DNA from: Octopus bimaculoides
Taxonomy: Eukaryota
Assembly: GCF_001194135.2 (NCBI RefSeq)
Contig: NC_068983.1
Location: 136,527,047-136,591,046, forward strand
Reading direction: 5' to 3'
Length of the DNA stretch: 64,000 nucleotides
Shown one piece after another: positions 1 through 58,729 of the stretch. The notes under the pieces were generated by a model that had not been told where the DNA came from, ran no database searches, and worked only from the letters and a program-made list of their open reading frames with translations. A program made the position numbers and the translations under genes. Numbering within the stretch: the stretch's first letter is position 1; each line of letters starts with the position of its first letter.

Positions 1-97
1 ACCACCTTTAAAATAACACATTGTATAATGTAGTTTAAGATAAGCAACATTTGAAAAAGAGATGTGATAGTTATAGCTGGAACATTTTTGATCATAA

Positions 98-381
98 ATC
101 ATCATCATCGTTTAACGTCTGTTTTCCTTGCTGGCATGGGTTGGACTGTTTGACTGAGATCTGGAGAGCCAGGAGGCTGCATCAGGCTCCAATCTGACCT
201 GGCAATGTTTCTACAGCTGGATGCCCTTCTCAATGCCAACCACTCCGAAAGTGTAGTGGGTGCTTTTTACTTGCCACCGGCACAGGAGCTAGTCAGGTAG
301 GCCTGACATCGATCACATTCAGATAGTGCCTTTTACATGCCACTGGCACAGGGGCCTGTCAGAGGGTACTGGCATCGGCCA
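98..381 (-). mobile_element. RTE LINE 3' UTR fragment with (GAT)n tail
   Basis: Starts (CAT)n-CGTTTAACGTC and matches the 3' end of the copy at 7945-8838, which is attached to an RTE ORF terminus. Confidence 0.85.
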
Positions 382-1749
382 TATAAATAATACCATAACA
401 AACTATGTGAAACTTTCTATGTAACTTAAGCTAATGAAATCACTGTTGTCTTTAAAAGGGGTATTACACACATCTTGTTCTGCTTTTATTTCAGGACAGC
501 ATGCCAACAATAAATATGGGATTTCTATGATCAGAACTCTAGTTGATTTTTTTGATAGCACCCCTGAGAGCACCCCTGGTCCAGTGATATAAGTTTTCTC
601 ATTTTAAAGTATTCATATTGAAATTTAAATCTTTCATTCTAATTTTATATAAGAATCTTTCATTAAGATATATTCCAAATCAACTTAAAGGAAGAAGTTA
701 CTTATTTTTGCTAAATCAGTCCAAATTCTCAACTATTTTCAAAGCAAATTAAAAAAACATTGAAAATGTAAGTACATTAGTAATGAAAAGAATTAAGCAA
801 TAGAATTCAACCAAAACTAACATGCCAGTGCTCTCATTACCATATGGTTGTCATGAATGTGTAGGAGATTCTGAAATCCCTGATTTGTTTGGCTCATCTT
901 TTCTCGTATTCAAACTGCTCTCTTTACAAAATAATAAATAAATAGAATCAGCTAAAATAGGACTTATAAATGATATCAGCTACAAAAATGACACCTCAAT
1001 CTAAATATATTATTATATTACTATATTACTATACTTTTCAAATCCCTCCACCTTACTCTAATCAGATATCACATGGATTGAGAGAAAAATGCTGAAACTT
1101 TTCCTTGGTTTTATGATTTAAATTAATATAACCTTCAGCAAGTACATTACTTTAGCCACAGATAATCTTTATCTTACTAACAACCAACTATAGTCTATAT
1201 CAATCCCATAAATTCTATTGCGTCATCTTCTTTTCAACTCTTCCGCCTTCTCTTTTCCCTTTGTCTTTTCCCTTTGTCTTCTTTCTTTGTTTTCCCTCTA
1301 TCTCTTTCATGATCTCCTTCTCTTCTGTCTCTTTCATGTCCTTATTATCATCATTATTATTATTTCTTCTTCTGTTAATCCCAAATTGAAGCACTTATGA
1401 AAGTTACACAATACTATTACTATATTTGCAGTGATAACATGGGACATAATCCAAACCAAAATAGCTAGCTTAATCTAAAACTTGCTTTCTATGAACAACA
1501 GCAAACAGCTACCTTTTATCTTCTGCTGTACAATATTTCATTCTTTACATTTTTTTGTTTGTTTTCCTCCCTAAAAATCCCACATGACATCATTTGAATC
1601 TAATCAATGCTTTTACATCTCACAGACAAATTACAATATATGTAGGCTACCCAGTAAAAATTGAAAGCAATTGATATAATGATCAAGTGTTTAAAGTTCA
1701 CTCAGTAGCATTGCATTTAATCCAATGTAGAATATACATTATTCTTGCT

Positions 1750-1975
1750 CAGTGTTTCCAACCAGAGTTCCCCCAGAACACAAGGGTTCTGTGAGAGGTT
1801 TCCCAAACAGGGTTACTCTGTAATCCCATGAGAGGTTAGTAGAGTTCCATGAGAAATGGTGCTAAATAAGCTAATTATATGCTGGCGCATTTTAGAGTTA
1901 CTTTTCTGTTTAATTTTGTATTTGTAATTTTAAAGAAATCCTGATTGGTGTTAAGGGGACCTTATAGGGAAAATT
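1750..1975. mobile_element. Degenerate hAT/Charlie-like MITE
   Basis: Begins CAGTGTTTCCAACC, resembling a Charlie TIR. Right end and TSD not recognisable. Confidence 0.35.
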
Positions 1976-2161
1976 ATCTTTTAATAGGGAATTGTAGGGA
2001 AATTTGGTCTAAAGAAGTTCTTGGTGAAGATGGAATTTGCTAAACATTCTTTGCAGCATCTGATGGATTTAACTTTACAAAAGTAGTTTATTCTCTTATG
2101 AAACTTCACTTTATAAAAGAGAAAGAAAAAAGATATATAATAATTATTATGTATCGAGTTA

Positions 2162-2806
2162 AATTGGACACTAAACTTCCACTTGCGAAGACCTGTTGAG
2201 GCAAGTGAAATCGAAATCGAGTTAAATTTGACGACTGGCACCCATGCTAACGTCGTCTCCCTCATTGGACACGAAACTCAGCTTGCGAAGACTTATTGGG
2301 GCAAGCGAAAGCGAAATTGTGATGGCATCTGTGCCCAGTTATGCCTTTCTGGCACTTGTGCCCGCGGCATGTGTAAGGACTTTCGAGCGAGATTGTTGCC
2401 AGTGCCCCTGCGGGTGGCACATAAAATACACCATTTTGAGCGTGGCCGCTGCCAGTACCGCCTGACTGGCCTTCGTAGGATTTTCGAGCGAGATCGTTGC
2501 CAGTGCCCCTGGACTGGCTCTTGTGCAGGTGGCACATAAAATACACCATTTTGAGCGTGGCCGTTGCCAGTACTGCCTGACTGGCCTTCGTGCGGGTGAC
2601 ATGTAAAAGCACCCACTACACTCTCTGAGTGGTTGGTGTTAGGAAGGGCATCCAGCTGTAGAAACTCTGCCAAATCAGATTGGAGCCTGGTGTTGCCATC
2701 CGGTTTCACCAGTCCTCAGTCAAATCATCCAACCCATGCTAGCATGGAAGGTGGCCGTTAAACGATGATGATGACGATGATGATGATGATGATGACGATC
2801 ATGACG

Positions 2807-2836
<30 letters not shown>
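2162..2836 (+). mobile_element. RTE LINE 3' UTR with internal tandem repeats and (GAT)n tail
   Basis: Reverse-complement match to 7945-8570, including the ~95 bp dimer and 45-65 bp repeats. Ends GTTAAAC(GAT)n. Confidence 0.88.
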
Positions 2837-2838
<2 letters not shown>

Positions 2839-4230
2839 GGAAACATGGAATGTATTTCAAGGATTCCCTAAGAGTAAAATAGTTGCATTATACTCATCTA
2901 GTCAGCTGACTTAAAACAGACCCAAGACACACCACAGAGTGATTTTAATCATTAGTGTTAAGAGGAACTGAAAATGCCGTGAAGTTCATTATCTTCATTT
3001 AGTATGTCATTGCAAATCAAACTGATAGAGTCTATAAAATTATGAAAATACTCTGAGCATTGTGTTAAAGTATTAGGATACCTTCAGTCTAGTGATCCAA
3101 TTCCAGTGAACTGGAAGTAGAAACAAGTATAAATAATTCTTTTGTGGTTATATAAGTATGAACTATCTAAATGTCCTGTATTTAGTAAAATTTATGTTAA
3201 GCGTGAGAAAAATAATTACTCTCAGGTAGTATGCAAATCTACAAAAATAGGTATATCAATAAAATGGTTGAGAAAATTGTAAATGAAGATTCTGCAAATC
3301 CTTATGAAATTGGCTTTTAGAATACTATAATGATGAAGATGAAATTCAATAACTTTATTAACCACAACTGAAACAAGATACCCAGTTACTAAAATGGAAG
3401 CCTTAGCATTATACTTGCCGAAAAATTAAATTGGTCTCAGACCATAGGTCACCATTTTCATTTTTAACAATAATTCAAGCTTGCAAAAGTAATATCTGCA
3501 TGTATTATAAAAACAACAGCATTTTATTATGAATATGCATTATCATGATTGGAATTTATTAATTTGGTTTAGATGAACATGATGATGATGATGATAAAGA
3601 TGATGATTTTTTTTATCCATTTTTTATAAATTAACATTATAAAATTTCAAAACATGAAAATAGGGAATAGTAATGGTAATATTTTATCTGGTATATTAAA
3701 AAGAATGATTAGTAGTAATTGGAGCAATTATTCTATTGTTGGGAGGCCATTCAGGTCATTAATAAATACGTTAACAGTTGATAATGGTATCTTGTGTAAA
3801 AGAGAATTAATTGTTCTACCAGCATTGATGATAAAAGCTGTGCATGGTGATGTGCATTGTGACTCAATAGCAACAAGGAAGTGGCTGGAATTAAGAGCAC
3901 ACTGGCCAAGCTACTGTAAAGATGTGGAACATTAAGTAAGATGTTGAACATATGCTGGAAAAATCTGATATTATCTTACACAGTTCATACTTAGCCTAAA
4001 GAAATTAAAACTTGGATACATTATGCATAAGGATCATGCTTATATATGAAGATGTTAGGACTGTTCCTTAATACGTTAATGCATCCTTTGGGTGGACAGA
4101 TATATTAAGGGTTATGAATAAAGAAGCACAAATAGTTATGCAGGTATTAAAGAACTGTGTTTTCCTGAAATAATATTCCAGAAAATTAATGTCTAATAAA
4201 GCCTGTTATTTTTATGATGATATGCATTTT

Positions 4231-5010
4231 CATCATCATCATCATCATTTAATGTCCACCTTCCATGCTGGCACAGGTGGGACAGTTTGACAGGAGCCAG
4301 CCAGGCAGAAACCTGCACCAGACTTCTGTGTCTGTTTTGGCAGGATTTTTACAGCTGGATGCCTGTCCTAACACCAACCACCCAGCAGAGTAGGCTGAGT
4401 GCTTTTTACATGGTTTTTACAGACGAGGTTAGTTTTGGTAAGGTTTTTATAGCTGGATGCCCTTCCAAATGCCAACCACTTTACAGTGTGGACTGGATGC
4501 TTTTTAAGTGGCACCTGCACTAATAGGATAACCAAGTAACTTGCAAGACAAAAATCTTTTGAGAGGAGAGGGGGCCTTGAAGGAGGTGATCTTGTGTCAG
4601 ATGATGGTTATAGTGAGACAGAAATAGGTGTCTTGTTGTAGAAGAGGTACAAGGTTACCCAGCTGGAGAGAGAGAGTGAGTGAGAGATCAGGAATGAGGA
4701 TAGAGACGGGTGTGCTGTCGTAAAGGAAATACATGGTTACCCAAACTGAGGAGAAGGAGAGAGAGGTGGGGGGAGACAGCAGGAGAGAGATGGTGGCGAA
4801 GTGCTGGTCATACTCGCAAGGGATGGCGATCAGAATATAAATGGGATGGTCGAGTAAAAGAAGAGATAGATGGTGGAAAGTGCTAGGGCATACGCTTGAG
4901 GTTTGAAGGTCATAATATGTGGCAGGAGCATGAGTAAAGTGTGGAGAAGGGGAATGCAGTGAGTGGTGAAAATCTGGGTATAAAAAGGGGGTGGGGAGGG
5001 GGCTGTTAAA
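4231..5010 (-). mobile_element. Older RTE-type 3' end plus purine-rich extension
   Basis: (CAT)n-TTTAATGTCCACCTTCCATGCTGGC and ACAGCTGGATGCC motifs. The downstream GGA(A/G)ATACATGG(T/C)TACCC block recurs near 17255 and 26190. Confidence 0.6.
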
Positions 5011-6615
5011 ATGGATTGCAACTTGGTGTTTTAGAATCTCTCATAATTATAACTTGATAAGAATTATATTTAAACCTTGTATATTAGACTCATATTGGTG
5101 TTTTCTGCATTAATACTTTCAAGATCAACCTGTAATTGAATGCATTGAGCATTGTAAATAAATCTTTTAGTTTATTTCACAATCTATTTGCTAGCAGATG
5201 TCTTGTTTGCAAGACATGTAAAGGGGAATCAAAGTTGTCCCAGATAGGCCTAAGAATTATTGTACTCACGTCTTTACCTTTTTCTCATTATTAAGTTCAA
5301 AAAGATGAGGCAGTGCCCAAAGCCTAAGTCTGAAAAAATAACTAGAGAATTAAAACTGGATCAATATTTACTTCTCTAGGAACCTACCTCCTCATTCACC
5401 TCACATATCGTCAGTAATAGACAACCAATACACATGCAAGCTGATCCTCTACATATTAGCTTGACTTGCTCAAAATAGCAGTCAAATTTTCTCCAAATGA
5501 CACTGTACTATTTAAAAACATAGAGATAAATGCATTAGATGTAATAGTCCTAAATGCACTACCTGAAAAAAGGAAGAATGAGTTTCATAATAGAGTGCTT
5601 TTGATCATACATTTGCTCAAGCTGGGCCAACATATGAACAGCAACAACCAACACTTATTTCACCAAATTTGGAAGAATTAAAGTCATCGTTGACTTACAA
5701 TTTGATTTGAATGCAGAAACATCAATCACCAAATGAAATATAAGAAAGCTTCATATCTAACATGTCAATACATGTAGAAAATAATAATAATAATAATAAC
5801 TGTCTCCTAAGAGTTGATACAAAGCTCAGGTTTCTTGATGTTAGGCAGATTCAATATAAATTTTCCACTGGATAAGACACATTTACATTTCAATTAACAT
5901 TCCCTAAGAATTTAATTCCTTATAACTTACAACTATGTAGACTGAAGTGCATAGCATTGAGAGTATAACTGAAATACGCAATATGAGTTGATAGTAAAAG
6001 AAGCTATTTATATTTAATCATTTTGCTCATACAACTACAATCCAGCTAACTATCTTTACATTGATATATATCAGTATAATACAGAATATATATACATAAT
6101 AGTGTCTGTGTACATGTGTTTCCTCACTGTCTTTTATTGGCATGTCAATTTTGGAAAAATTTTTAGATTGTCTTACTTTTCCATTTGGAATTTGTCCCAG
6201 TTACTACCAAACAATTGGTCTACCCTTTCTAAAAGTGGTAATAATTTCAATAAATCAAGAATTTATCCTGTATTCTTTTTAATTTAACCCTTATTCATAT
6301 TTGTTCTTCAAATATGTAAACTACTGACCACTCTGGGTTAGTTTTCTTAACCCATGTTTATTTCAGATATATACATGTATGTGTGCTTGAGAAAACCCAT
6401 CCAGTTGACATAGCACAGCATGTCTAAGATTCTGAAAGCATAACATGTTTGCACACAACTGGGTCCCTCCCCTGAGTCACTTCCTATTGATATTCATCCC
6501 ATCATCCCCATCCTACTTATATTCACCATCACCCACCACACTTTTGTTTATATTTATCCTTTATTCTCCCCCACTACACACAAATACATAAAAAACACAC
6601 TCTTACAAACTTTAA

Positions 6616-6838
6616 CCCTTTAGTGTTTACATTATTCTGCCATAATTAATGCTTTTTTTTATCCACGTTATTTTGAACTAATCATGCATTATCTCGTAGC
6701 TATGAGATTTTGATGAGGTAGCTGTTAATTTTTAAAACGATATTGTAGGGTTGGTGGGAGAGACCAGATCTGGCCAGTTTGAACATAGAATAGGCAGAAT
6801 ACTTTTGGCCGGATATGGCCGGTTTAAATGCTAAAGGG
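6616..6838. mobile_element. piggyBac-type MITE
   Basis: TTAA at 6612-6615 and 6839-6842. TIRs CCCTTTAGTGTTTACA / rc CCCTTTAGCATTTAAA. Confidence 0.85.
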
Positions 6839-7944
6839 TTAACATCTTCATCTCTTCAACATTCATCCCACCATCATTCTCCTATCTTCTGTATTATTCT
6901 GATGATGTAATTTTAGAACTTGTTGCTACATGCCATATCACACCATTGTTTCTGTATAGCAAGTTACCTTTTCCTCTCTTCTGATCTACTCCCAATTGAC
7001 ATCCATCTTTCATCCCATATTTACCAACCACTACCATTGTTCACCATTCACTACATTCACCTTCTACATACATCTGACCACCTCATTCTTCACTCCTCTT
7101 ACTTATCAGCTCCCCTGGGTATGTTTCAAACAACAACAAATCCTTTGAGTGAGATATGATGATAAAACATCTTCTATTCATAGCTGCGTGGTTGCATTCA
7201 TTTGTTCTTCTTGGCTCAGGGCATTTCAGCAATGACGTTCTCCTCTTTAATGGAATTATAACCTAAAGGGACTGGGACATCCTTGGCTGTAGGCATTACA
7301 GAAAATGTTAGAGCAGGATCTTGCTCTAACATTTTATTTTTTCCTTCATGTTGTTTCATACAGCTTGACACTGCAACATTTACTTTATTCTCTGCTATTG
7401 TTTGCATGCATGCAAACAAATATACATACATTTTAAAGTTATCTTCACAGATATTCTATAGAATTTAGATCCAGCACCAAAAGTTATAACATCTTGGATA
7501 CAAATAAGTCTATGTGATTGAAGATAGAAAACAGACAATGGGTGTATATGCATTTTCAGGAGTTATTGCTCTTTCTTCAGCACTACAGCCAATCCATTAA
7601 CCTTCCACAAACACATTGTTTAAACAGCCACTAAGTTTAGCAGTGAAACATTATTGGATAAACAAACTTACATATTAAACACATTCTTGGCAACTGGTAT
7701 GTAGGTACATCATATTTCATTCAGCAACCATAATATACTATCAAGTGATTGAATCACACTGCTAACTCAGAAAGGTAGAATATAGTATTGATTTCTAAAT
7801 CTTTACTATATTTAGTAGTATACTGTATCCCTACCAACAATACATACATATATACGTACATACATATACTCAAGAAGAACTTAAATTAAACTCAGAGAAA
7901 AACCATACATACATGCATGGATGCATACATATGTATGTGTGTCT

Positions 7945-8838
7945 CATCATCATCATCATCGTTTAATGTCCGCTTTCCATGCTAGCATGGGTTGGACGAT
8001 TTGACTGAGGACTGGTGGACCAGATGGCTACACAAGGCTCCAGTCTGATTTGGCAGAGTTTCTACAGCTGGATGCCCTTCCTAACGTCAACCACTCTGAG
8101 AGTGTAGTGGGTGCCTTTACGTGCCACCAGCAAGAAGGCCAGTCAGGAGGTACTGGCAATAACCACGCTCAAATGGTGTTTTTTTACGTGCCACCTGCAC
8201 AGGAGCCAGTCCAGTGGCACTGGCAATGATCTCTCTCAAATGTTTTTTCACGTGCCACCGGCACAAGTGCTAGGAAGGCGACGTTGGTAACGATCACGCT
8301 CAAATGGTGATATTTACATGCCACTGGCAAGGAAACCAGACAGCTGCTCTGGCAATGATCACGCTCGAACGGTGCTCTTAGAGCTCCACTGGTACAGGTG
8401 CCATCACGATTTCGCCTTCGCTTGCCCCAACAGGTCTTCGCAAGCAGAGTTTAGTGTCCAATGAAGGAAAGGTTGGCATGGGTGCCAGTCATTGAATTTA
8501 GTTCAATTTCGATTTCCCTTGCCTCAACAGGTCTTTGCAAGCGGAGTTTAGTGTCCAACGAAGGAAAGGTACGCATAAGTGGGCTGGCTACATCCCTGGC
8601 AGAGGCCTTGGATTTTGGTCTCACTTGGCTTGCTGAGTCTTCTCACACACAGCCTATTTATAAAGGTCTCGGTCACAAGTCATTGCCTCGGTGAGGCCTA
8701 ATGTTCGAAGGTCATGCTTCACCACTTCATCCCAGGTCTTCCTGGGCCTACCTCTTCCACAGGTTCCCTCAACCGCTAGGGTGTGGCACTTTTTCACGCA
8801 GCTATCCTCATCCATTCTTGCCACATATCCATACCAGT
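7945..8838 (-). mobile_element. RTE LINE 3' portion (ORF C-terminus, 3' UTR, tail), cut by an assembly gap
   Basis: Minus strand 8838-8621 reads WYGYVARMDEDSCVKKCHTLAVEGTCGRGRPRKTWDEVVKHDLRTLGLTEAM (RTE C-terminal RW.GH..RM / GRPRKTW motifs), with an internal stop, then a repeat-rich UTR and (GAT)n. Confidence 0.92.
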
Positions 8839-9340
8839 NNNNNNNNNNNNNNNNNNNNNNNNNNNNNNNNNNNNNNNNNNNNNNNNNNNNNNNNNNNNNN
8901 NNNNNNNNNNNNNNNNNNNNNNNNNNNNNNNNNNNNNNNNNNNNNNNNNNNNNNNNNNNNNNNNNNNNNNNNNNNNNNNNNNNNNNNNNNNNNNNNNNNN
9001 NNNNNNNNNNNNNNNNNNNNNNNNNNNNNNNNNNNNNNNNNNNNNNNNNNNNNNNNNNNNNNNNNNNNNNNNNNNNNNNNNNNNNNNNNNNNNNNNNNNN
9101 NNNNNNNNNNNNNNNNNNNNNNNNNNNNNNNNNNNNNNNNNNNNNNNNNNNNNNNNNNNNNNNNNNNNNNNNNNNNNNNNNNNNNNNNNNNNNNNNNNNN
9201 NNNNNNNNNNNNNNNNNNNNNNNNNNNNNNNNNNNNNNNNNNNNNNNNNNNNNNNNNNNNNNNNNNNNNNNNNNNNNNNNNNNNNNNNNNNNNNNNNNNN
9301 NNNNNNNNNNNNNNNNNNNNNNNNNNNNNNNNNNNNNNNT
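8839..9340. other. Assembly gap (N run)
   Basis: N run. Other gaps: 18078-18776, 44424-44450, 47336-47456, 53583-53592, 56451-56670. Confidence 0.99.
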
Positions 9341-9363
9341 ATATATATATAGTCACACATATA

Positions 9364-10276
9364 CAGTGATTTCTCAACTATCACATGTGTTATGTTCCAA
9401 AACCCCCTACGATAGCTAAAATCCGCGAAGTAGAAACAGTACAGTAGTATATATTTTTTTATCATTTTTATAATTTGTATATATCTATTTTATTATTTTT
9501 ATATATATAAGCTTTTATAAACTCGCCCCACACACTTGGGAGCACCTGTGTCTTCTCTTTTTTTGCAGATGAGGAACATAGTGATGGGCAGTTGCTGACA
9601 CTGCCTTTTCTTCTGTGTAAGGAGGTTTTTATAAACTTCCATGGCTCTGTCAATTGCATTTCTAAACTGCAATGCAAGAATCATCTGGCCATCTGAGTCC
9701 TCCATCATTCTCTGAAGTTCTTTTGCTAGAATTGAGAGATGTTCTAGTGATAGGCTGCATACCTTCTCCCTTCCTTAAGCATGTCAAGGAGTCTCACCTT
9801 CTCTGCTATAGTAAGCATCTTCCTCTGGCACTTGGGTTCATTGCCAGAAGCCTTAGAAGGTGCACAACATTTGGGTAACTTTATAGGACTTGCGATAAAC
9901 TCACAATTTTACACACAAAAGTAAAACAACACCACACACTTGCCTCCCAAGTTTCAATTTCCAAACAGTATGTGCGATTCTTTGTTTACTCATCTACAGT
10001 ACACTATGTATTTTCTTTTAATATATTTTAATTAATGTGTTATACAGTGCAGTACTGTACTGTATTTTTACTTATTATTTCATCAATTTGTAGGTGTGAA
10101 AATGTTTATTTTACCACAGAAATAATTAAAATCTAAAAAAATATAAATACTTATCAACCGCAGAAACCCATGATATACTGAGAAGTCCACAATATAAATT
10201 TATATATATTAGCCTGAAAAATCCACAATGTACTGAGGGCGCGATAGGTGAACCACGATGTGGTGAGTGATTACTG
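9364..10276 (-). mobile_element. Internally deleted Tigger/pogo DNA transposon
   Basis: TA flanks at 9362-63 and 10277-78. Imperfect TIRs CAGTGATTTCTC / rc CAGTAATCACTC. Minus strand gives PSKASGNEPKCQRKMLTIAEKVRLLDMLKEG (Tigger N-terminal HTH) next to LQFRNAIDRAMEVYKNLLTQKKRQCQQLPITMF (Tigger C-terminal tail). Confidence 0.85.
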
Positions 10277-10894
10277 TATATGTATATATAATGGAAGCTG
10301 AAATTTCACAAATCATTACTCCAAGTTTCTTATGCCAATCTTCAAACAGGCCTTAACAAAATTGTATGTGAGAGTATGTCCACATGTCAGCATGTATGAA
10401 TGCATTCATGTAAGAATGCATTCTCATTTACCTGCAAGAGTGGTGGATTGCAGTATATCTGCAGAATAAATGATTGATAAACTCTGTTTTGTTTGATGTA
10501 GAAATTATTACTCTTATAATGCTTGCTAAGGGAAATGACTAGGCTATAAAATCTTTATAAAACTTAAGCTATGTTGTTCAGGTTTTAGCTGCTATACAAC
10601 CTTTTTTCTCCATTTATTTGTTCTGGATCTTTTGGACTTGTTAGCAGTCGTATTTCTAAGGTTATCATAGCAGGGTTGTCGTTAAGGTACAGTTGAACTG
10701 TTGATCATGTAACAACATTCTACTTGTTTTTACTGTACATGTTTACAATTCCTTCCCCTCTGATAATTTCATTTGTGATTTTTAAGAATTTTGTATCAAC
10801 TTTATAGATTCTTTCACAAACAAATGGAGTTCCAGATATTCAAACTATTCTTAATATCTTCATTTGGTTATTGTTTAGACTTTATTTAACTCTG

Positions 10895-11050
10895 ATCCAG
10901 GAGACTCATGACATTCAGCTTTGACCTATCCAGTCTTTTTCTTCAGACACAGTGTATCTAGGATTACATTATCCAATGCATTTTCACAATTTTTAAAGAC
11001 AGTAAGACATTATTCAAGGAAAGTTTAACAGCTATTTCTAACAGATCTGG
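10895..11050. repeat. Unclassified dispersed repeat with GATTTGGCTGCTATTTCTAG-like core
   Basis: Similar blocks near 12130-12340 (reverse), 15600-15660, 37360-37520 and 45150-45230. Confidence 0.5.
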
Positions 11051-12829
11051 CTTGGTTATACAATGGTGAGGCATAGACTAGTGCAGAGTGACTCAAGATC
11101 ACTGTTTTGATGCTCTGTTGTTTTCAGATTCATATCTTTGCAGCCAGACCTTTGCGTTCGAGTAGGATCATTGTATATTTAAATTTTATTTTCTGCTTCA
11201 TGGTGCATATGTACCACAATGAAGTGTTTGTTTCTTCAAAATGTGCCCTTTTTGTGTCAAAGGTCTTGTTGGCAAGTAGCTTTATCAGTGCAGACTGTTT
11301 TTATTTAAAGTAGTGGGTATTTTATAGAAATCTTTTGTAATACTTTATAGATCATGGAACTTGCAGTTACTGGATTTTGATTCAGTTATTTGATGATTGT
11401 TTTTTATTTTCTGTGTAGCTCCAAACTGTTATAAAAATAACATTTAGCACTTAGCATTAATGATATTTGATAAACTCTTAGTGACTTCTAGACAAATCTT
11501 TTGATCTTCATACCAGTAGTATTGGTATGAGGTTGTGCTTAACAGATCTAAGATTCAATCCTCAACAGGTAAAAATAATTTGAAGATAGTAAACAAAAAC
11601 TCTTGGGTAAAACCGAGTATCCTAGAAATGCACTGCGGAAGTTTCTAACCAAACAGTTGATATTAGTCAGATATTTTCAAACTGAATCCAACATTTTTCC
11701 TACTCATCCAGAACAGTTACATATATTAATAGCCAAAGATAATAAAATGTATACATTCTCTTTGAAAATTTTACAAGGAACGGGATAGCTTCTTGATTGG
11801 CAAGTCTGTCTACACTTGGCTTTATGTCAGTGAATCTTGGTATATGTTTATTTACCATTCCTTAACACTAACGCACAGTTTTGCTTGTCTCTTCATATCA
11901 ATTGATTGCTTTTGATAATGGTGTATACAAACAGTATAAATTTGTTTGTAAAATTCTATTAATACACCGAAACAGTTTATTTGTATTCATACATTTAGCT
12001 CTGCTTCTCTCACTTCTTTCTTTTGAATTTCTTGTTTATAATTTTAAGTTCCAGGAAACAGAATATCCCAGTCTATGTAATCATATACATTGCCTGGTTT
12101 AGCACCAGTATGTGGTCCATCAACATCAATGATGAGAGACCCTTTTCATGATCAATGAGCCTGCTAAAAATAGCAGCCAAATTTCTTTCAATATAAACTC
12201 CCTGCCATCTTAAATAAAGAATAGACATATTAGATAATGTTATCTTAGAATTACTATATCTTTATCTTGAAAAAGAAAAACTATAGTCATGGTTGGATTT
12301 CATTTGGTCAAAGGTGAACTCAAATCAGGGATGAACTAAAGCTAAACAACAAGAATGACAATACCATTTAAAATCTTCACTCTATCGCAAAGATTTGGAT
12401 CAGACACCTGGGTCTGTGCTCACCTGTTGGTACTTGTTGTTCATACAAGCTGGATACATGTTAACTTGTTCCAATTTGCCAGCTTTAAGAGTTTAGTTGT
12501 GATAAGAAGAGCATTCAATTATAAAAACTATTTCTCCAATGACACAAGCTTTGAAAATTGGAGGTAGAACAGTTAAAAAGAAGATTTATAGATTGAATTC
12601 GTTGAATTTTGTTTTCTTTTCCTTGGATTTGTGGATACAGTTAATAGTGATTCTCCCCTTGTTCCTCAAAACACCAAGTTTATCCACCACAACAATGCAA
12701 CCACTGTGGTTTGGCAGAATGGAAACATTACAATTCTCTTTGAACCTAGCAGGATATAAGACTGAAAATAAACATGTTTATATATCTTTGTTGATGAAAA
12801 TATCATTCCTTTCATTTCCTACACCTCTT

Positions 12830-13050
12830 TATCATCATCATCATCATCACCATTTGCTTTCCATGCTGAAAAGGGTTAGACTGGGCATCTCATTTTAAGT
12901 CAGTTCCTATTTGAAGTTACTACCCTCTAGATATGTCCACTAACCATGCTTGCTTGCACATTTCATTTTGGTATGGATTGTATGGCTGGATGTCTTTCCT
13001 AACACCAACCAGTTTACAGATTGTAGTGATCACATTTTATCAAGAGAAGT
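12830..13050 (-). mobile_element. Degenerate RTE-type 3' end
   Basis: (CAT)n-TTTGCTTTCCATGCTG followed by GGCTGGATGTCTTTCCTAACACCAACC. Confidence 0.55.
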
Positions 13051-13257
13051 TTTCAATGTCCTCAAGGCTATGTGATGAGAAATTAGCTTTCAACTATATA
13101 ATTTTGGTTTCATTCCCACTGCACAACACCTTAAGCACATGTCTTCTGTTATAGCTCATAGCTAACTAAAGCCTTGTCAATGGATTTTTGGGGACAGAAA
13201 CTGAACAGAAGCCTGTCATGTGTGTGTGTGTATGAATATATATATATATATATCACC

Positions 13258-13800
13258 TCCTGGTCCACCAGTCCTCAGTCAAATCGTCCAACCCATGCTA
13301 GCATGGAAAGCAGACGTTAAACGACGATGATGATGATGATGATGATGATGCCAGTGGAGCACTAACAGCACCGTCCAAGCATGATCATTGCCAGAGCAGC
13401 TGTCTGGCTTCTGTGCAAGTGGCACGTAAATAGCACCATTTGAGTGTGATCGTTACCAGCGTCGCCTTACTGGTACTTGTGCCGGTGGCACGGTAGAAAA
13501 CATTCAAGTGAGGACATTGCCAGTGCTGCTGGACTGGCTCCTGTGCAGGTGGCATGTAAAAAACACCATTTTGAGCATTGCCGTTGCCAGTACCGCCTGA
13601 CTGACGCTTATGTCGGTGGCACATAAAAGCACGCACTACACTCTTGGAGTGGTTGGTGTTAGGAAGGGCATCCAGCTGTAGAAACTCTGGCAGATCAGAT
13701 TGGAGCCTGGTGCAGCCATCTGGTTCACCAGTCCTCAGTCAAATCGTCCAACCCATGCTAGCATGGAAAGCAGACATTAAACGATGATGATGATGATGAT
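13258..13800 (+). mobile_element. Two head-to-tail RTE 3' ends (13258-13350 and 13351-13800)
   Basis: Both end AAAC(GAT)n. The terminal ~70 bp are near-identical. Confidence 0.88.
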
Positions 13801-16619
13801 ATATATATATATATATACACACACACATATCTATATGTATACACACACACACACATACTTGTATGTTTGTTTACATCTGTGATCACTTATTCAAAAGCCA
13901 TTCAGGTGGTGGTGTTTGGCATTTGTCCTGTCAATAATTTGTTCACTCACTTTGTGCTTTCAAAGCTGTATAGAATAAGAGCTCCTTTAGCATCAAGGGT
14001 TAGCATCAAGAAGAGTACCTGATTATAAAACAATGTTTCACTACCATATTTGTCTAATCATGCTAGCATGGAAAAATGAATGTAAAAGCAAAATAAACTA
14101 TTTTTAAAATATACACCATGTTTGTATATAGGAGATTAAATTTTCCCATGGATTCTTTCCTAATTTATGGTGGTAGGGAATGAACTGAGGAGCAATTGAT
14201 TACTATACCAGCAGGTTGTGTGCATATGCGAAAGCCTTCTCTTCTTAGCTCAAAATAAACTTTGGTGTTGTCATGTAGTTCCAGATCAGTCATAGCTGGA
14301 AAACTAAAGAAAGGCATTTCATTCATGGCAATCCTATCATTTGTATATTAGAAACTATATTGTTTGATTTAGCTTTTGTTTAAGGTTGTAGTTTATGACT
14401 GTTTTAACTGCTTTTTCACCAGGTTATGTAACTACTGAATCATTCTTATCACCCTGTCATATCTGCCATTGACAACCTCTCCACTCTACTCTCCCACTCT
14501 GCACATCAGTACCATATCTTCTGATCTCTCTCACAAGTTTATTATATGGCTGCTCTCCTCCCTTCCTATACTGCCACTTACTTCCTCTTTCCTGAGCCAT
14601 TCATATTTCTTTCACTTTCTCCCTGTACTGATATTTACCATCCACTGTACCCCCACCTTTATTCCTTTCACTGCATTCACCTTTACACCCATTTGTTATT
14701 TTCCTCTCACACTCTAATGAACTTATCCATTCACCCTTCCTCATTCTTTGTGCATATCCTCTTTTATATTCACCTTCTTGTATCTTGGAAGTAGGCTCTG
14801 ACACCTAATCTCCATTATCATTGTCTTTTTTCCAGTTACTCCCATCCACCCTTACGTAATATTGGGTATCCATATTTCTTCTTTATAGCAAAACACCTGT
14901 ACCTGTCCTGCTATCATACTTTAGCTTCTCAACACCTGTATACAGGGGATTAAAGAAGAGTCTTTATTGTAGCTGCAATATGTCAATCTTCTTCTTTATA
15001 TAAATATATAGATTTCAGACAAAACTGAAACATGTAAAAGAAAAGTGTAAAGCTGTATGAAACAAAGCAAAACTATTACATTTTAATTTACATTTTTATT
15101 TGGAATGAGTTTGTTGTTTACCCATTGTTTAATGTATTTTGATATGTTATAACAAATATTCTCTTTTTAATAACTACAATATATTTTGATTAATTAGAAA
15201 GACATTTGCAAATAGCTGTAATGGCTTGATTGAGAGAGAGTGTTGCATGAAGATTTGAAGGTCTCTGGGTCAATTCCAGTTTTCAACATGTTGATAAAAT
15301 CATTTTGTTCTTGAAAATATTACTGTTTAAAACCTCTGTAGCTTTACTTACTGAGAGATGATGATGAAAAGGGGAGCTTTTTTGTCACATAGATACATAC
15401 TGATGCACAATCATCTTTATAAAATGATGGGACTTTCATACTTGACATATAAATTCTTTATAACCAGATGAGACATTCATACTTGAAGTATATTTCTATG
15501 ATATTTCTATGCCACAATTGAAGTGACCTAGGATCAAAGGTTCTAAAGCTGTAACCATTATGCCCTTTTCTTCATTCATAGAACATGTGCCTCTCTTTTT
15601 TTAAAGGTAATAGGGTATTATTTGAGAAAGATATGATTGCTATTTCTAGTTGCTCAATCTATGATCTGGGTTATTTTCCCCCTTTTTTTTCTTCATTACA
15701 GTTTTCCTATTTTCTTCAAGAATTTCAGAGAAAATATGTCTTAATAACCTTTAGTAAACAACTATGAATATTGGTTATATATGTTCAGCTTCCTTCTATA
15801 AGATGGACTTGTCCCAAATGTGTGTTTAAGTTGCTGTACTAACTAGATCTTCCTCCTGCACCTGTACATTTGTAAACAAATCTTTTATAAACTGCAACTT
15901 ACAGATACTGCCCAAGGATTCTCTGCAAGTTATTATTCTTTGCCGACTTATATAATATTTTTAATGTTTTCAATATTTACTTAGTTGTACATTGTTTTCT
16001 TTCATGAGCTCTTAGAAATAAACAAAAATTGTGTAAGCTAGAAAGAAAAGAAGGGAACAAAAGATATTACAAGAATAAAAAAAACATTAAAAATCATTGC
16101 AACAAAATTTTATGTTACTAGTGGATATGTTGTGTGTACAAAAACTTGTGACATAGAGGGCTTGATACCTTGCTATTTATTTAAATTTGTTGTTATATAT
16201 TCAGATGTAACTTCAGTTAGCTTCCACATCAATTGAAAACTAGCTAGACATCTCTAACTTTCTTTTGTCTTCTTATGCCTTTTTTTTTTAGTGGCTTGTT
16301 GTCTTTGTGGAAAGGGAATTAAACATTCTTCATGTTGCTTGAGAATGCTTTTGCATTTTCTTCCGGATCTTTATCTAGATATTTATCTACCAATTACTCC
16401 ACCCATCCAGTCAGAACTGGATTCTCTTTTATTTTATTACCTATTTATCTGACTGTGTTTTAATGTTTTTATATACCCAATTTGTATGCATCTCATTCTC
16501 TCTTTCTTTCACTTTCTCTTTCTATCTATATCTTTCCCTCTCCCCCCCTCTCTCTCTTTAATACATATATATATAAAGAGATAGAGAGAAAGAGAGTTAG
16601 AGCATAGCCTTGGGGATCC

Positions 16620-16870
16620 TAGTGTCCTTCATTCAGATCATATGCCCCACTGAATATAACATTCCTGCCAAATGATAGATTCAACATTAGGCATATTTGC
16701 ATGCAGCAGGACCTCCTGGTTGGACTTGTGGTCTCGCCAAGAAATGTTTACTACAGATCATAGTTACCACAACTGAAAGCTCTTCAGCTTTTTTTGATAT
16801 GCTGCCAATACACTGTTTGTCATGGCCAGATCGTATTTAGAAGTTGTCCATTGGAGTTAGATTGCCTTTT
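16620..16870 (-). mobile_element. Old RTE-BovB-like LINE remnant, internally deleted
   Basis: Minus strand gives NSNGQLL / YDLAMTN (endonuclease end) next to HIKKLKSFQL..ISWRDHKSNQEVLLHANMPNVESII (post-RT region), with frameshifts. Confidence 0.55.
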
Positions 16871-17002
16871 CAAAACCACCTATGTTTGGCAATTCTTACC
16901 CACTCTTGCATTAAAATTATTGAAAGCAGCAGGTTTTTAGTTATGTTCACAATATACAGGTGTCTATGTAGTGTATAATAGTACTCCTCTTTATTCATCT
17001 CA

Positions 17003-17188
17003 TTGGCAAGAATGGACGAGGATAGCTGTGTGAAAAAGTGCCACGCCCTGGCAGTTGAGGGAACCTGTGGAAGAGGTAGGCCCAGGAAGACCTGGGATGA
17101 AGTGGTGAGGCAAGACCTTCAAACTTTAGGCCTCACTGAGGCAATGACTAGTGACCAGGACCTTTGGAAATATGCAGTACGTGAGAAA
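17003..17188 (+). mobile_element. RTE LINE ORF C-terminal fragment
   Basis: ARMDEDSCVKKCHALAVEGTCGRGRPRKTWDEVVRQDLQTLGLTEAMTSDQDLWKYAVREK, same family as 8621-8838. The UTR is missing. Confidence 0.9.
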
Positions 17189-17458
17189 AGGGAGACACCT
17201 TTATACCAGCTGTTGAGGGGCTAAAGTATGTGAGTGAACAAGGCCAAATGTAGGAGATACATGGCTACCCGACATTATATAGGAGTGGGTGACAGTCACT
17301 GAGAAAAAGAAAGATGGTAGTGGTAGGGTACAAGAGTGAACCTTCAAGGTACAAGGTGAACATAAGGAAGGACAAGGGGACTGGATCAAGAGGGTGGGGC
17401 AGGGGGCATAAGAGTGTGAGAAGAGAGTAACAAATGGTTTAGAGAAGGTAGTAGAGGT

Positions 17459-19162
17459 TGTAGTAACGCCTTGTCTCGTGCGCATGCGTAGTCATCAATA
17501 TCCAAGTTTGGCGCCCTGATTCTTTCTCTTTTCTCGCCGGCCGGCGACGATGGCAGACGTCCAACAGCAGAGCTCTCTAACATGTCAGCACCAGAGCTTC
17601 ACAAATAACTGCTGCCTATTTTCACCATAAATAAATATTGTTGTGTTGATAGTTCAGAGTCAGCGTTTCGTTGTTTATTTAGAATTTAATATAGGAAAGC
17701 AGGTGTACACCTAATGGTGTATAACAACTTTCCTATAATTGGTGACCCCGAGTAAGAACAATGCAGCCGAGGATTCTGACCTACCAACCGATAATACTAC
17801 ACTGCCGCTGCTGACATAAGTAAATACGGCATTTCGAACAGCTACCCAACTCAAGAACAAACGCAGCCCAGAGATTTCCTATAACTGGTGACACAACTAA
17901 AAGAACAACTGCAGCCACGGAATCTGAACTGCGACCAATCAATACTACAATTGGTACCCCGAGCTAAAAAGATCTACGGACCTCATTTCAACAGCCAGTT
18001 TACAGCGACTCCATCAACAGCATCTCCAGCTACGACTATACACCGCCGTCGCCATCAACAACCACGACGAACTACAANNNNNNNNNNNNNNNNNNNNNNN
18101 NNNNNNNNNNNNNNNNNNNNNNNNNNNNNNNNNNNNNNNNNNNNNNNNNNNNNNNNNNNNNNNNNNNNNNNNNNNNNNNNNNNNNNNNNNNNNNNNNNNN
18201 NNNNNNNNNNNNNNNNNNNNNNNNNNNNNNNNNNNNNNNNNNNNNNNNNNNNNNNNNNNNNNNNNNNNNNNNNNNNNNNNNNNNNNNNNNNNNNNNNNNN
18301 NNNNNNNNNNNNNNNNNNNNNNNNNNNNNNNNNNNNNNNNNNNNNNNNNNNNNNNNNNNNNNNNNNNNNNNNNNNNNNNNNNNNNNNNNNNNNNNNNNNN
18401 NNNNNNNNNNNNNNNNNNNNNNNNNNNNNNNNNNNNNNNNNNNNNNNNNNNNNNNNNNNNNNNNNNNNNNNNNNNNNNNNNNNNNNNNNNNNNNNNNNNN
18501 NNNNNNNNNNNNNNNNNNNNNNNNNNNNNNNNNNNNNNNNNNNNNNNNNNNNNNNNNNNNNNNNNNNNNNNNNNNNNNNNNNNNNNNNNNNNNNNNNNNN
18601 NNNNNNNNNNNNNNNNNNNNNNNNNNNNNNNNNNNNNNNNNNNNNNNNNNNNNNNNNNNNNNNNNNNNNNNNNNNNNNNNNNNNNNNNNNNNNNNNNNNN
18701 NNNNNNNNNNNNNNNNNNNNNNNNNNNNNNNNNNNNNNNNNNNNNNNNNNNNNNNNNNNNNNNNNNNNNNNNNNNNTTTGTGTGTGTTTGTGCCACATCT
18801 TGTGGGTGGTTTTCAGTAGCCATCCTGCCTCAGGCGTTCCTCCAATTTCTATTTTCGTGCGTTCCGCACTGGCAGGGGAGCCCTGTAGTAACGCCTTGTC
18901 TCGTGCGCATGTGTAGTCATCAATATCCAAGTTTGGCGCCCTGATTCTTTCTCTTTTCTCGCCGGCCGGCGAAGATGGCAGACGTCCAACAGCGGAGCTC
19001 TCTAACATGTCAGCACCAGAGCTTCACAAATAATTGCTGCCTATTTTCACCATAAATAAATATTGTTGTGTTGATAGTTCGGAGTCAGCGTTTCGTTGTT
19101 TATTTAGAATTTAATATAGGAAAGCAGGTGTACACCTAATGGTGTATAACAACTTTCCTATA
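17459..19162 (+). mobile_element. LTR retrotransposon (Ty3/Gypsy-like) with two 279 bp LTRs; internal region mostly gap
   Basis: LTRs at 17459-17737 and 18884-19162 with 5 mismatches. AGGT TSD at 17455-58 and 19163-66. PBS-like TGGTGACCCCGA at 17740. PPT GGCAGGGGAG just before the 3' LTR. Confidence 0.93.
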
Positions 19163-19578
19163 AGGTGAATGTAGTGAGTGTTTAAAAAGGGTGTAGGTGC
19201 AGTAGATGTGAAATACCATTTTGGAGAGGGAATAAGGTGAATAGATTAGAAAGAATGGGGATGATGTACAAGGTATAGGAGTTGTGAGGAAGGATATATT
19301 GATATGTCAGATTTTTGTATTTGGTTTGCAAGATTCTTGATATGAACTTGTGTGGCATAATGACCCTTGCAAGATATAACAAAATGTGTTTGATGATATT
19401 TATTTCAGTATGCACTTTAGTTGTATATAAATTAGACTGTACCTGTGATATCTCCTTGATATCTCCATGTTCTTTGGATATGTTTTATATCTATTTTGCC
19501 TTTTTGAAATTATTCCATTTTCTGTATGTTTTTGCTTTTCAAAAAATTTCTTGTATTCATTTCATTGGTTTCCAAAAA

Positions 19579-19597
19579 TTCCTTAACTCTTTGCTAC
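19579..19597 (+). promoter_or_regulatory. U12 (minor spliceosome) branch point TTCCTTAAC and probable AC 3' splice site
   Basis: TTCCTTAAC at 19579-19587. AC at 19596-97 ends 11 nt after the branch A; an alternative AG lies at 19598-99. Confidence 0.85.
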
Positions 19598-19703
19598 AGC
19601 TTTTGAAGCTCTTATTCTCATGACCATCTTTGCAAATTGTGTAGCATTGGCAATATATACACCATATCCTGAATCAGACACCAACGAAATCAATATGGCA
19701 CTG
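19598..19703 (+). CDS. Cav1: L-type voltage-gated Ca channel alpha-1, domain I S1 exon (106 nt)
   Basis: A|GCT TTT.. encodes [35 protein letters not shown], matching the Cav1 IS1 motif [12 protein letters not shown]. Donor GTAAGT at 19704. Missed by the ORF track. Confidence 0.96.
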
Positions 19704-20442
19704 GTAAGTTGAGTTTTTATTCATGATCCTTTCTATATTTATTTATTATAGAGTGCAAAATAAAATCCATTTCTCTCTCTCTCTCTCTCTCTCTTTTCAT
19801 CTTATCATAGTCTTCATTTTCCATGTTTTTTTTAATCTTTCTAGGTTGTTTTTTTTGTCTTTTGGTATATGTTTTATATTCCCACCCCCATCCCTGTTTC
19901 ATGTATTTTATTCCTGTGGGATTTTTGTTTCAATTGCAATTTCAGGAGATGTTAAGGAAAACTGCAAAGTGGTTAGGTTGCATAATGGTGGATGTTAAAA
20001 GGAAAGAAATAAGAAAAGTAACAATAGTTTCAGTAATAGTGCTAGAAGTATTCTTAATAATAATCAGACCAATTTTAAAACAATAAGGCAACTAAAAATC
20101 TATTTCCTTGGTGTTCAATTCATCTATCAACAACTTCAGTATTAACAGATCAACTTAAATATTTATTTGGCAAGAGAGATGATTCATATATAAACAGTGG
20201 TTTCAATTGCTTCTTTTGGAGGAGAAAGTGAATGAGAGAGTCAGTCTCTTACTCTCTCCTTCAAAATGTTTAGAATATTTGTGTGCATATGTGAATGACT
20301 ATAGGAGACTTAATGTGATTGGATGTGTATGTATTTAACCTAAAACAGGAAGAATCATTGAGGGGGAGAAAGAGGAAATGGCTGTATGTATGTATGAATG
20401 AAGGAGGAAAAAGAAATGACAGATATATATTCCCAAATTAAT

Positions 20443-58589: not shown

Positions 58590-58729
58590 GAAAATGTAGA
58601 ATATGTATTCCTTGTGATCTTCACACTAGAATGTGCCATGAAGATCATAGCCTATGGATTTGTGTTACATCCAGGAGCATATTTACGCAACGGATGGAAC
58701 ATTCTAGATTTTATAATTGTAGTTATTGG
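58590..58729 (+). CDS. Cav1: L-type voltage-gated Ca channel alpha-1, domain I S2-S3 exon (140 nt)
   Basis: [47 protein letters not shown], a Cav1-type [11 protein letters not shown] motif. CAG acceptor at 58587-89 and GTAAGT donor at 58730. The track ORF 58556-58831 is the wrong frame. Confidence 0.98.

Follow-up and report, generated by a model that had tools for sequence, protein, structure and literature searches.

The alpha-subunit genes of voltage-gated Ca and Na channels are said to contain a U12-type AT-AC intron, reportedly described by Wu and Krainer and by Spafford et al., both in 1999. The D1S1 U12 intron is conserved in almost all Cav and Nav genes, in a comparison that includes the mollusc Lymnaea (Fux et al. 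2018, PMC6259924); in rat Cacna1c, for example, it is intron 2 (PMC8767276). The D1S1 position is between the N-terminus and IS1, after ...EWK, in phase 2. In Lymnaea stagnalis LCav1 and other molluscan Cav1, which are L-type, the variable N-terminus ends at a junction described in the Spafford-lab NSCaTE paper as 'often U12-type, AT-AC' and common to Cav and Nav (PMC3634016). A preliminary description of the DNA studied here had stated that Na and Ca channel genes retain a U12 intron before IS1, and this literature agrees (PMC6259924, PMC3634016). Minor introns have also been catalogued in more than 3,000 genomes, including that of O. sinensis, and molluscs are relatively rich in them (Larue & Roy 2023, PMC10639083). 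Such introns can splice ~2-fold slower (PMC8199999).

Here we describe the 3' end of such an intron in the L-type Cav1 alpha-1 gene of Octopus bimaculoides. It is located in a window of 64,000 nt, the whole stretch of DNA analysed (G000:C3:136527047-136591046, in a genome of 2.34 Gb), and we assign it with high confidence to the conserved D1S1 U12-type AT-AC intron. As in the D1S1 system, the octopus intron occurs after ...EWK and in phase 2, and it has the same ATATCCTTT donor, TTCCTTRAC branch site, and YAC acceptor, with no difference in kind. However, it is ~103 kb in length as compared with ~450 nt in the Cav1 gene of the nemertean Tubulanus polymorphus, and its codon after Lys specifies Ala instead of Pro, which puts an AG directly after the AC. 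This length and the incidental AC/AG juxtaposition are the only particular traits of this instance. It is otherwise a textbook channel-gene minor intron, already known and implicit in RefSeq models of a sister species. The finding opens no new question, and adds one more lineage that keeps the ancestral channel-gene minor intron, here in Cav1, Cav2-like, Cav3-like, and one Nav-like gene of the same genome.

Splice signals of the octopus Cav1 intron

The sequence at the acceptor, read directly from the window, is ...ccaaaaaTTCCTTAACtctttgctACAGcttttgaagct..., and it contains the following features (/ marks a splice junction).

Window 19579-19587, plus strand: U12 branch-point sequence TTCCTTAAC, read as a motif and complementary, with one bulged A, to GUAAGGAA of the genome's U12 snRNA.
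Window 19596-19597, plus strand: AC at the 3' terminus of the intron (cTAC/A), which alone among the acceptors is in frame with the ATATCC donor.

We took as a U12-type branch point the consensus TCCTTAAC (TTCCTTRAY) near the 3' end of the intron, without a polypyrimidine tract between the two. In the window, the spacer between the TTCCTTAAC motif and the AC is only 8 nt, and the intron ends in YAC (cTAC/ at 19595-19597). The branch adenosine is at 19585 or 19586, that is, 12 or 11 nt from the last intron base. In minor introns the branch point is 10-20 nt from the 3' site, with an optimum of 11-13 nt (PMC8199999), so that the octopus spacing is inside the published optimum. The motif is present three times in the window, where 0.64 occurrences would be expected, and a count of three is also reached in 3 of 100 shuffled sequences. 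Because this enrichment is mild, the motif alone is weak evidence, and it is the position and the matching donor that carry weight.

The donor was sought in the 200 kb upstream of the window by tblastn with the conserved pre-IS1 peptide. The probe was a stretch of human Cav1.2 used only for locating the exon; our conclusions rest on database proteins found later. A single strong match was obtained, 83 kb upstream of the window.

G000:C3:136443510-136443913 (L012:6464-6867, window-relative -83536 to -83133), plus strand: upstream coding exon of 404 nt, identified by tblastn and as an open reading frame, 100% identical to O. sinensis XP_036357316.1.
G000:C3:136443914-136443923 (L012:6868-6877, window-relative -83132 to -83123), plus strand: U12-type AT-AC 5' splice site ATATCCTTTC, read from the DNA at the exon end.

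The upstream exon encodes GAAHNEKD... and ends with ...GTA GAA TGG AA (V-E-W plus AA). The DNA at its border with the intron is ...cgg att gta gaa tgg aa/ATATCCTTTCttaatg (gaatggaa/atatcctttc). The sequence ATATCCTTTC begins exactly where Cav1 homology stops, directly after ...GAATGGAA, and agrees with the extended 5' splice-site consensus /ATATCCTT(T) from +1 to +8/9. GTRAGT is absent near the end of this exon. In a whole-genome protein search the exon was found in one place only, on the same contig (C3) and strand (plus) as the window exon and collinear with it. The donor is identical in O. vulgaris (TGGAA/ATATCCTTTCTTAATG, L027:44813), with the intron diverging a few bases further on; this comparison within Octopus covers the donor only. 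No candidate homologues of the 106-nt exon were found among short open reading frames of other cephalopod genomic contigs.

The preliminary description had proposed, from the acceptor side, a U12-type AT-AC intron before IS1 of octopus Cav1, with a U12 branch point just before TAC/AG and an upstream exon ending in ..EWK. Donor, branch point, and AC acceptor all match this proposal; the donor is ATATCCTTTC and not a U2-type GTRAGT. The report that no RTATCCTT donor occurs on the plus strand of window positions 1-19597 was reproduced by our search.

The genome encodes the snRNAs of the minor spliceosome. An Rfam search detected genes for U12 (129.7 bits), U11 (94.5 bits), U6atac (98.2 bits), and U4atac (83.3 bits), all above their gathering scores, with a single match in the genome for each of U12 and U4atac. 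The recognition elements (U12 GUAAGGAA, AAAAGGG, and AAGGAGAGA) are intact. The U12 gene carries 5'-AUGAGUAAGGAAAAU, within which GUAAGGAA base-pairs with UUCCUUAAC except for one bulged A. U11 starts with UAAAAGGGU and U6atac carries AAAAAGGAGAGA, both of which are complementary to UCCUUU of the donor. U6atac (RF00619) has 35 matches above the gathering score, ranging from 98 down to 35 bits, which may be multiple copies, pseudogenes, or U6 cross-matches.

Given the observed signals, frame, junction, snRNA genes, and positional conservation, we infer the steps of splicing from the established minor-splicing model. The U11/U12 di-snRNP would pair with the 5' splice site (through U11, replaced later by U6atac) and with the branch site (through U12 GUAAGGAA), leaving the adenosine at 19585 or 19586 bulged. 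Proximity to the branch point (11-12 nt) would select the 3' site, probably with help, through exon definition, from the strong U2-type GTAAGT donor 106 nt downstream. TGGAA would thereby be joined to AGCTTT, giving ...V-E-W-K-A-F-E... at the start of IS1. Splicing of this intron is thus predicted from its signals to depend on the minor spliceosome.

Microsatellites occur by both exons. A (CT)n tract is located ~70 nt into the downstream intron (window 19776-19800), and a (GT)n tract ~30 nt past the AT-AC donor (L012:6900-6925). In O. vulgaris the (GT)n tract has another length and another sequence.

A second TTCCTTAAC-N8-ACAG, with the same spacing as the real acceptor, occurs on the plus strand at window 11858-11878, 7.7 kb upstream in the same intron. 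Downstream of it, translation in the frame of the real donor meets no stop for ~75 codons. We considered a duplicated exon at this site and rejected it (local alignment score 22, as compared with a mean of 19.6 and a maximum of 29 for shuffled sequences). No Cav-like coding sequence follows this look-alike, and no homology extends beyond the motif. Either chance or a role as a cryptic or decoy 3' site may account for it.

The spliced junction and its conservation

The exon that begins after the AC and the elements downstream of it are as follows.

Window 19598-19703, plus strand: 106-nt coding exon, phase 2 to phase 0, encoding (K) and IS1 of Cav1, identified by translation and by tblastn to IS1 of Cav1.2.
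Window 19704-19709, plus strand: U2-type donor GTAAGT of the next intron (19704-58589, 38,886 nt), which ends in ...tttttcag.
Window 58590-58729, plus strand: next Cav1 exon, 140 nt, encoding IS2-IS3 and followed by GTAAGT, identified by tblastn.

Use of the AC gives an exon of 106 nt in phase 2. The preliminary description gave the same size and phase for the homologous exon of vertebrate CACNA1C (exon 3); in the present comparison, 106 nt was confirmed for the Cav2-like paralogue and for nemertean Cav1. Joining the donor to the AC yields TGG AA + A GCT TTT GAA, which reads W-K-A-F-E in frame. Because A is both the last base of the exon and the first base of the intron, boundaries shifted by one base (TA...CA) give an identical mRNA; of these placements, only AT...AC fits a known splice-site class.

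Translated together, the three exons give 217 aa that match O. sinensis XP_036357316.1 at 100% identity, a protein annotated as 'muscle calcium channel subunit alpha-1-like', and all five O. sinensis RefSeq isoforms (Gnomon models) read EWKAFE. The assignment to Cav1 is supported by the UniRef name 'Voltage-dependent L-type calcium channel subunit alpha' and by the domains Ion_trans (PF00520), GPHH (PF16905), and Ca_chan_IQ (PF08763). A decapod cephalopod transcript, encoding a 2,012-aa protein in a cluster that includes Sepia pharaonis CACNA1D, was found among Logan RNA-seq contigs. These contigs are ~7 kb and intronless, and are therefore cDNA. The decapod contig reads GAG TGG AAA GCA TTT GAA at the junction. 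Both the O. sinensis models and this transcript from another cephalopod have the mRNA junction that exact removal of AT...AC produces. The 106-nt, phase-2, K-A-F-E reading first made from the window thus matches annotated and transcript-derived cephalopod proteins.

Among 120 homologues compared, 116 carry an EW[KRQ] motif, and 102 of these read K-P-F-E. K/R-A-F-E was seen in cephalopods, chiton, abalone, oyster, and Lymnaea; compared as proteins, the variant is common to the octopus and to Lymnaea, Haliotis, Ostrea, and Liolophura. Its spread across molluscs identifies Ala as a normal molluscan state, and EWKAFE, which the five O. sinensis isoforms and the decapod transcript share, is the native cephalopod sequence.

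The intron is conserved at the same codon position and in the same phase before IS1 in Tubulanus Cav1 and in Cav2-like, Cav3-like, and Nav-like paralogues of the octopus. These three paralogues share TTCCTTA(A/G)C, a spacer of 7-9 nt, and an AC at the homologous codon.

Cav2-like gene, contig C21: acceptor TTCCTTAAC-aaatgttcc-AC/GCCATTTGAA, exon of 106 nt.
Cav3-like gene, contig C6: acceptor TTCCTTAAC-actaatc-AC/ATGGTTTGAA.
Nav-like gene, contig C11: donor CATCC/ATATCCTTTT, acceptor TTCCTTAGC-atccatac-AC/TTTCAGCC.

A second Nav-like paralogue (G000:C20:8073519-8073647, minus strand; L035/L036) has no D1S1 intron and reads straight through ...NPLRRLAVCIATNVCFDYFLMFTICVNCVFLAI..., and the minor intron appears to have been lost from this gene. 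Tubulanus Cav1 has, at the same codon and phase, TGGAA/ATATCCTTTT ... TTCCTTAACctaacgttttcAC/GCCTTTTGAA, with the branch motif TTCCTTAAC, the acceptor cAC/GCC, and an intron of ~450 nt followed by a 106-nt exon. In Cav1 of the springtail Orchesella cincta, an intron also occurs at the same codon and phase, but its donor, TGGAA/GTAAGT, is of the major-spliceosome type, whereas the octopus has kept the ancestral U12 signals. This is an apparent U12-to-U2 conversion in Orchesella.

The protein model at the Orchesella locus (LJIJ01000704.1; L033, ~1370 and 2100-2190) has ~30 extra residues (VSQPCPLSSIPTGMSLALTDNMLFFLVS) before RPFEY, which look like mis-called intron sequence.

The practical value of the octopus junction is in annotation, as AT-AC introns break gene models. 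With the true junction TGGAA/AGCTTT (EWKAFE) known, the octopus Cav1 model can be set right at its N-terminus and in IS1. The remark in the preliminary description that gene predictors mis-annotate such introns is borne out in O. vulgaris, whose annotation splits Cav1 exactly at the AT-AC intron into two models (CAI9720192.1, P0126, and CAI9720191.1, P0127; locus L027). A 120-aa 'hypothetical protein' orphan covers exon 1 and the greater part of exon 2, to which a spurious tail is attached. The 1,982-aa channel is truncated at its N-terminus, and starts with MALENVEY at a Met inside the 106-nt exon.

The AG next to the acceptor

The AC acceptor is followed directly by a second potential acceptor.

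Window 19598-19599, plus strand: exonic AG, the first two bases of the exon and a potential cryptic acceptor, straddling two codons, with its A from the end of Lys AAA and its G from the start of Ala GCT.

Use of this AG gives an exon of 104 nt in phase 1. Joined to the same donor it yields TGG AAC TTT TGA (W-N-F-stop), a frameshift. The same exonic AG is present in cuttlefish-group cDNA (TGG AAA GCA). An AG directly after the AC is absent from the Cav2-like, Cav3-like, and Nav-like paralogues and from nemertean Cav1, which argues that the tandem AG is a by-product of the Lys-Ala codons and not a conserved element.

The preliminary description had inferred an ancient, rate-limiting splice site here, at whose tandem AC/AG acceptors slippage would frameshift the channel; both the rate limitation and the slippage are hypotheses. 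We considered whether the minor spliceosome, with the AC as its main acceptor, also accepts the AG 2 nt further on (AT-AG) at a meaningful rate. The frameshifted, prematurely terminated transcripts would then restrain Cav1 output, either as a regulated brake or as a leaky one. Measured from the branch adenosines, the AG is at 13-14 nt, within the functional range of 10-20 nt (PMC8199999), and it is kept in octopod and decapod sequences. However, its retention across cephalopods argues instead that it is harmless or tolerated, all annotated O. sinensis isoforms use the AC frame, and the AG coincides with the Lys/Ala codon junction (AA/A GCT) and is not shared with the three paralogues or the nemertean orthologue. 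We consider appreciable use of the AG unlikely. A broader proposal is that the ~103-kb Cav1 minor intron with its cryptic AG serves as a tunable gate on L-type output in cephalopod muscle and neurons. Minor-spliceosome activity or the choice between AC and AG would in that case set output via retention or via frameshift and NMD, with the look-alike at window 11858-11878 as a possible decoy or poison-exon acceptor. This proposal is speculative, and we think it very improbable.

An ordinary U2-type GT-AG intron might instead end at the AG at 19598-19599, with TTCCTTAAC present by chance and a 104-nt, phase-1 exon restoring K-P-F-E. The sequence ttccttaactctttgctacag is rich in pyrimidines, with YAG at its end, and K-P-F-E is the commonest reading in other phyla (the 102 of 116 homologues above), but the upstream exon border is TGGAA/ATATCC, which has no GTRAGT near it and no C to complete a Pro codon. 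The restoration of K-P-F-E by the AG, raised in the preliminary description, does not hold: with an upstream exon ending in TGGAA the product is a frameshift and stop, and Ala is native in cephalopods and several other molluscs. With a stop at the donor-AG joint and no GTRAGT nearby, K-P-F-E via the AG is excluded. Cephalopod proteins and cDNA read K-A-F-E, and we judge a U2-type intron at this position extremely unlikely.

That the signals are a chance motif or an assembly artefact, with donor and acceptor not belonging to one intron, can practically be dismissed. In its favour, TTCCTTAAC is only mildly enriched and has a look-alike at 11858-11878, and the intron contains 12 N runs. Against it, the splice signals (donor, branch site, their spacing, and the terminal dinucleotides) are consistent with one another and with the frame, the protein junction, and the conserved position. 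Each exon is present in one copy, and the two are collinear on contig C3, in a gene order that is also annotated in O. sinensis and O. vulgaris.

Length and content of the intron

The D1S1 intron of octopus Cav1, spliced from the AT-AC donor to the AC acceptor, spans G000:C3:136443914-136546643 and is 102,730 nt in this assembly, with a GC content of 34.5%. It includes 3,427 N in 12 runs, which make the true length uncertain and the value of 102,730 nt approximate. The portion within the window is as follows.

Window 1-19597, plus strand: the 3'-most 19.6 kb of the minor intron (102,730 nt in all), ending in ...TTCCTTAACtctttgctAC at 19597.

The expectation from the window that the intron exceeds 19.5 kb and continues past the window start was confirmed by this measurement. 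A U12 intron can thus work, or at least persist, at ~100 kb. One of the N runs, 699 nt of assembly gap or withheld sequence, is located at window 18078-18776, 820 nt upstream of the acceptor; the 11 further runs are outside the window.

The intron had also been described as full of transposons. No open reading frame longer than 179 aa, and no intact transposon ORF, was found in the whole 102.7-kb intron, and this part of the description is only partly true. Interspersed repeats are indeed present: two pieces of a high-copy repeat, at window 13349-13809 and at 17000-17187, have at least 39 further copies in the genome, with identities of 88-93% (among the scored copies, of 19,122 first-look candidates). 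The description holds in the sense of short, decayed or non-autonomous repeats plus simple sequence. The pieces at 13349-13809 and 17000-17187 are close together in other genomic copies, and the copy here appears to be interrupted or rearranged. Nearer the acceptor, window ~19311-19385 matches dozens of genomic loci.
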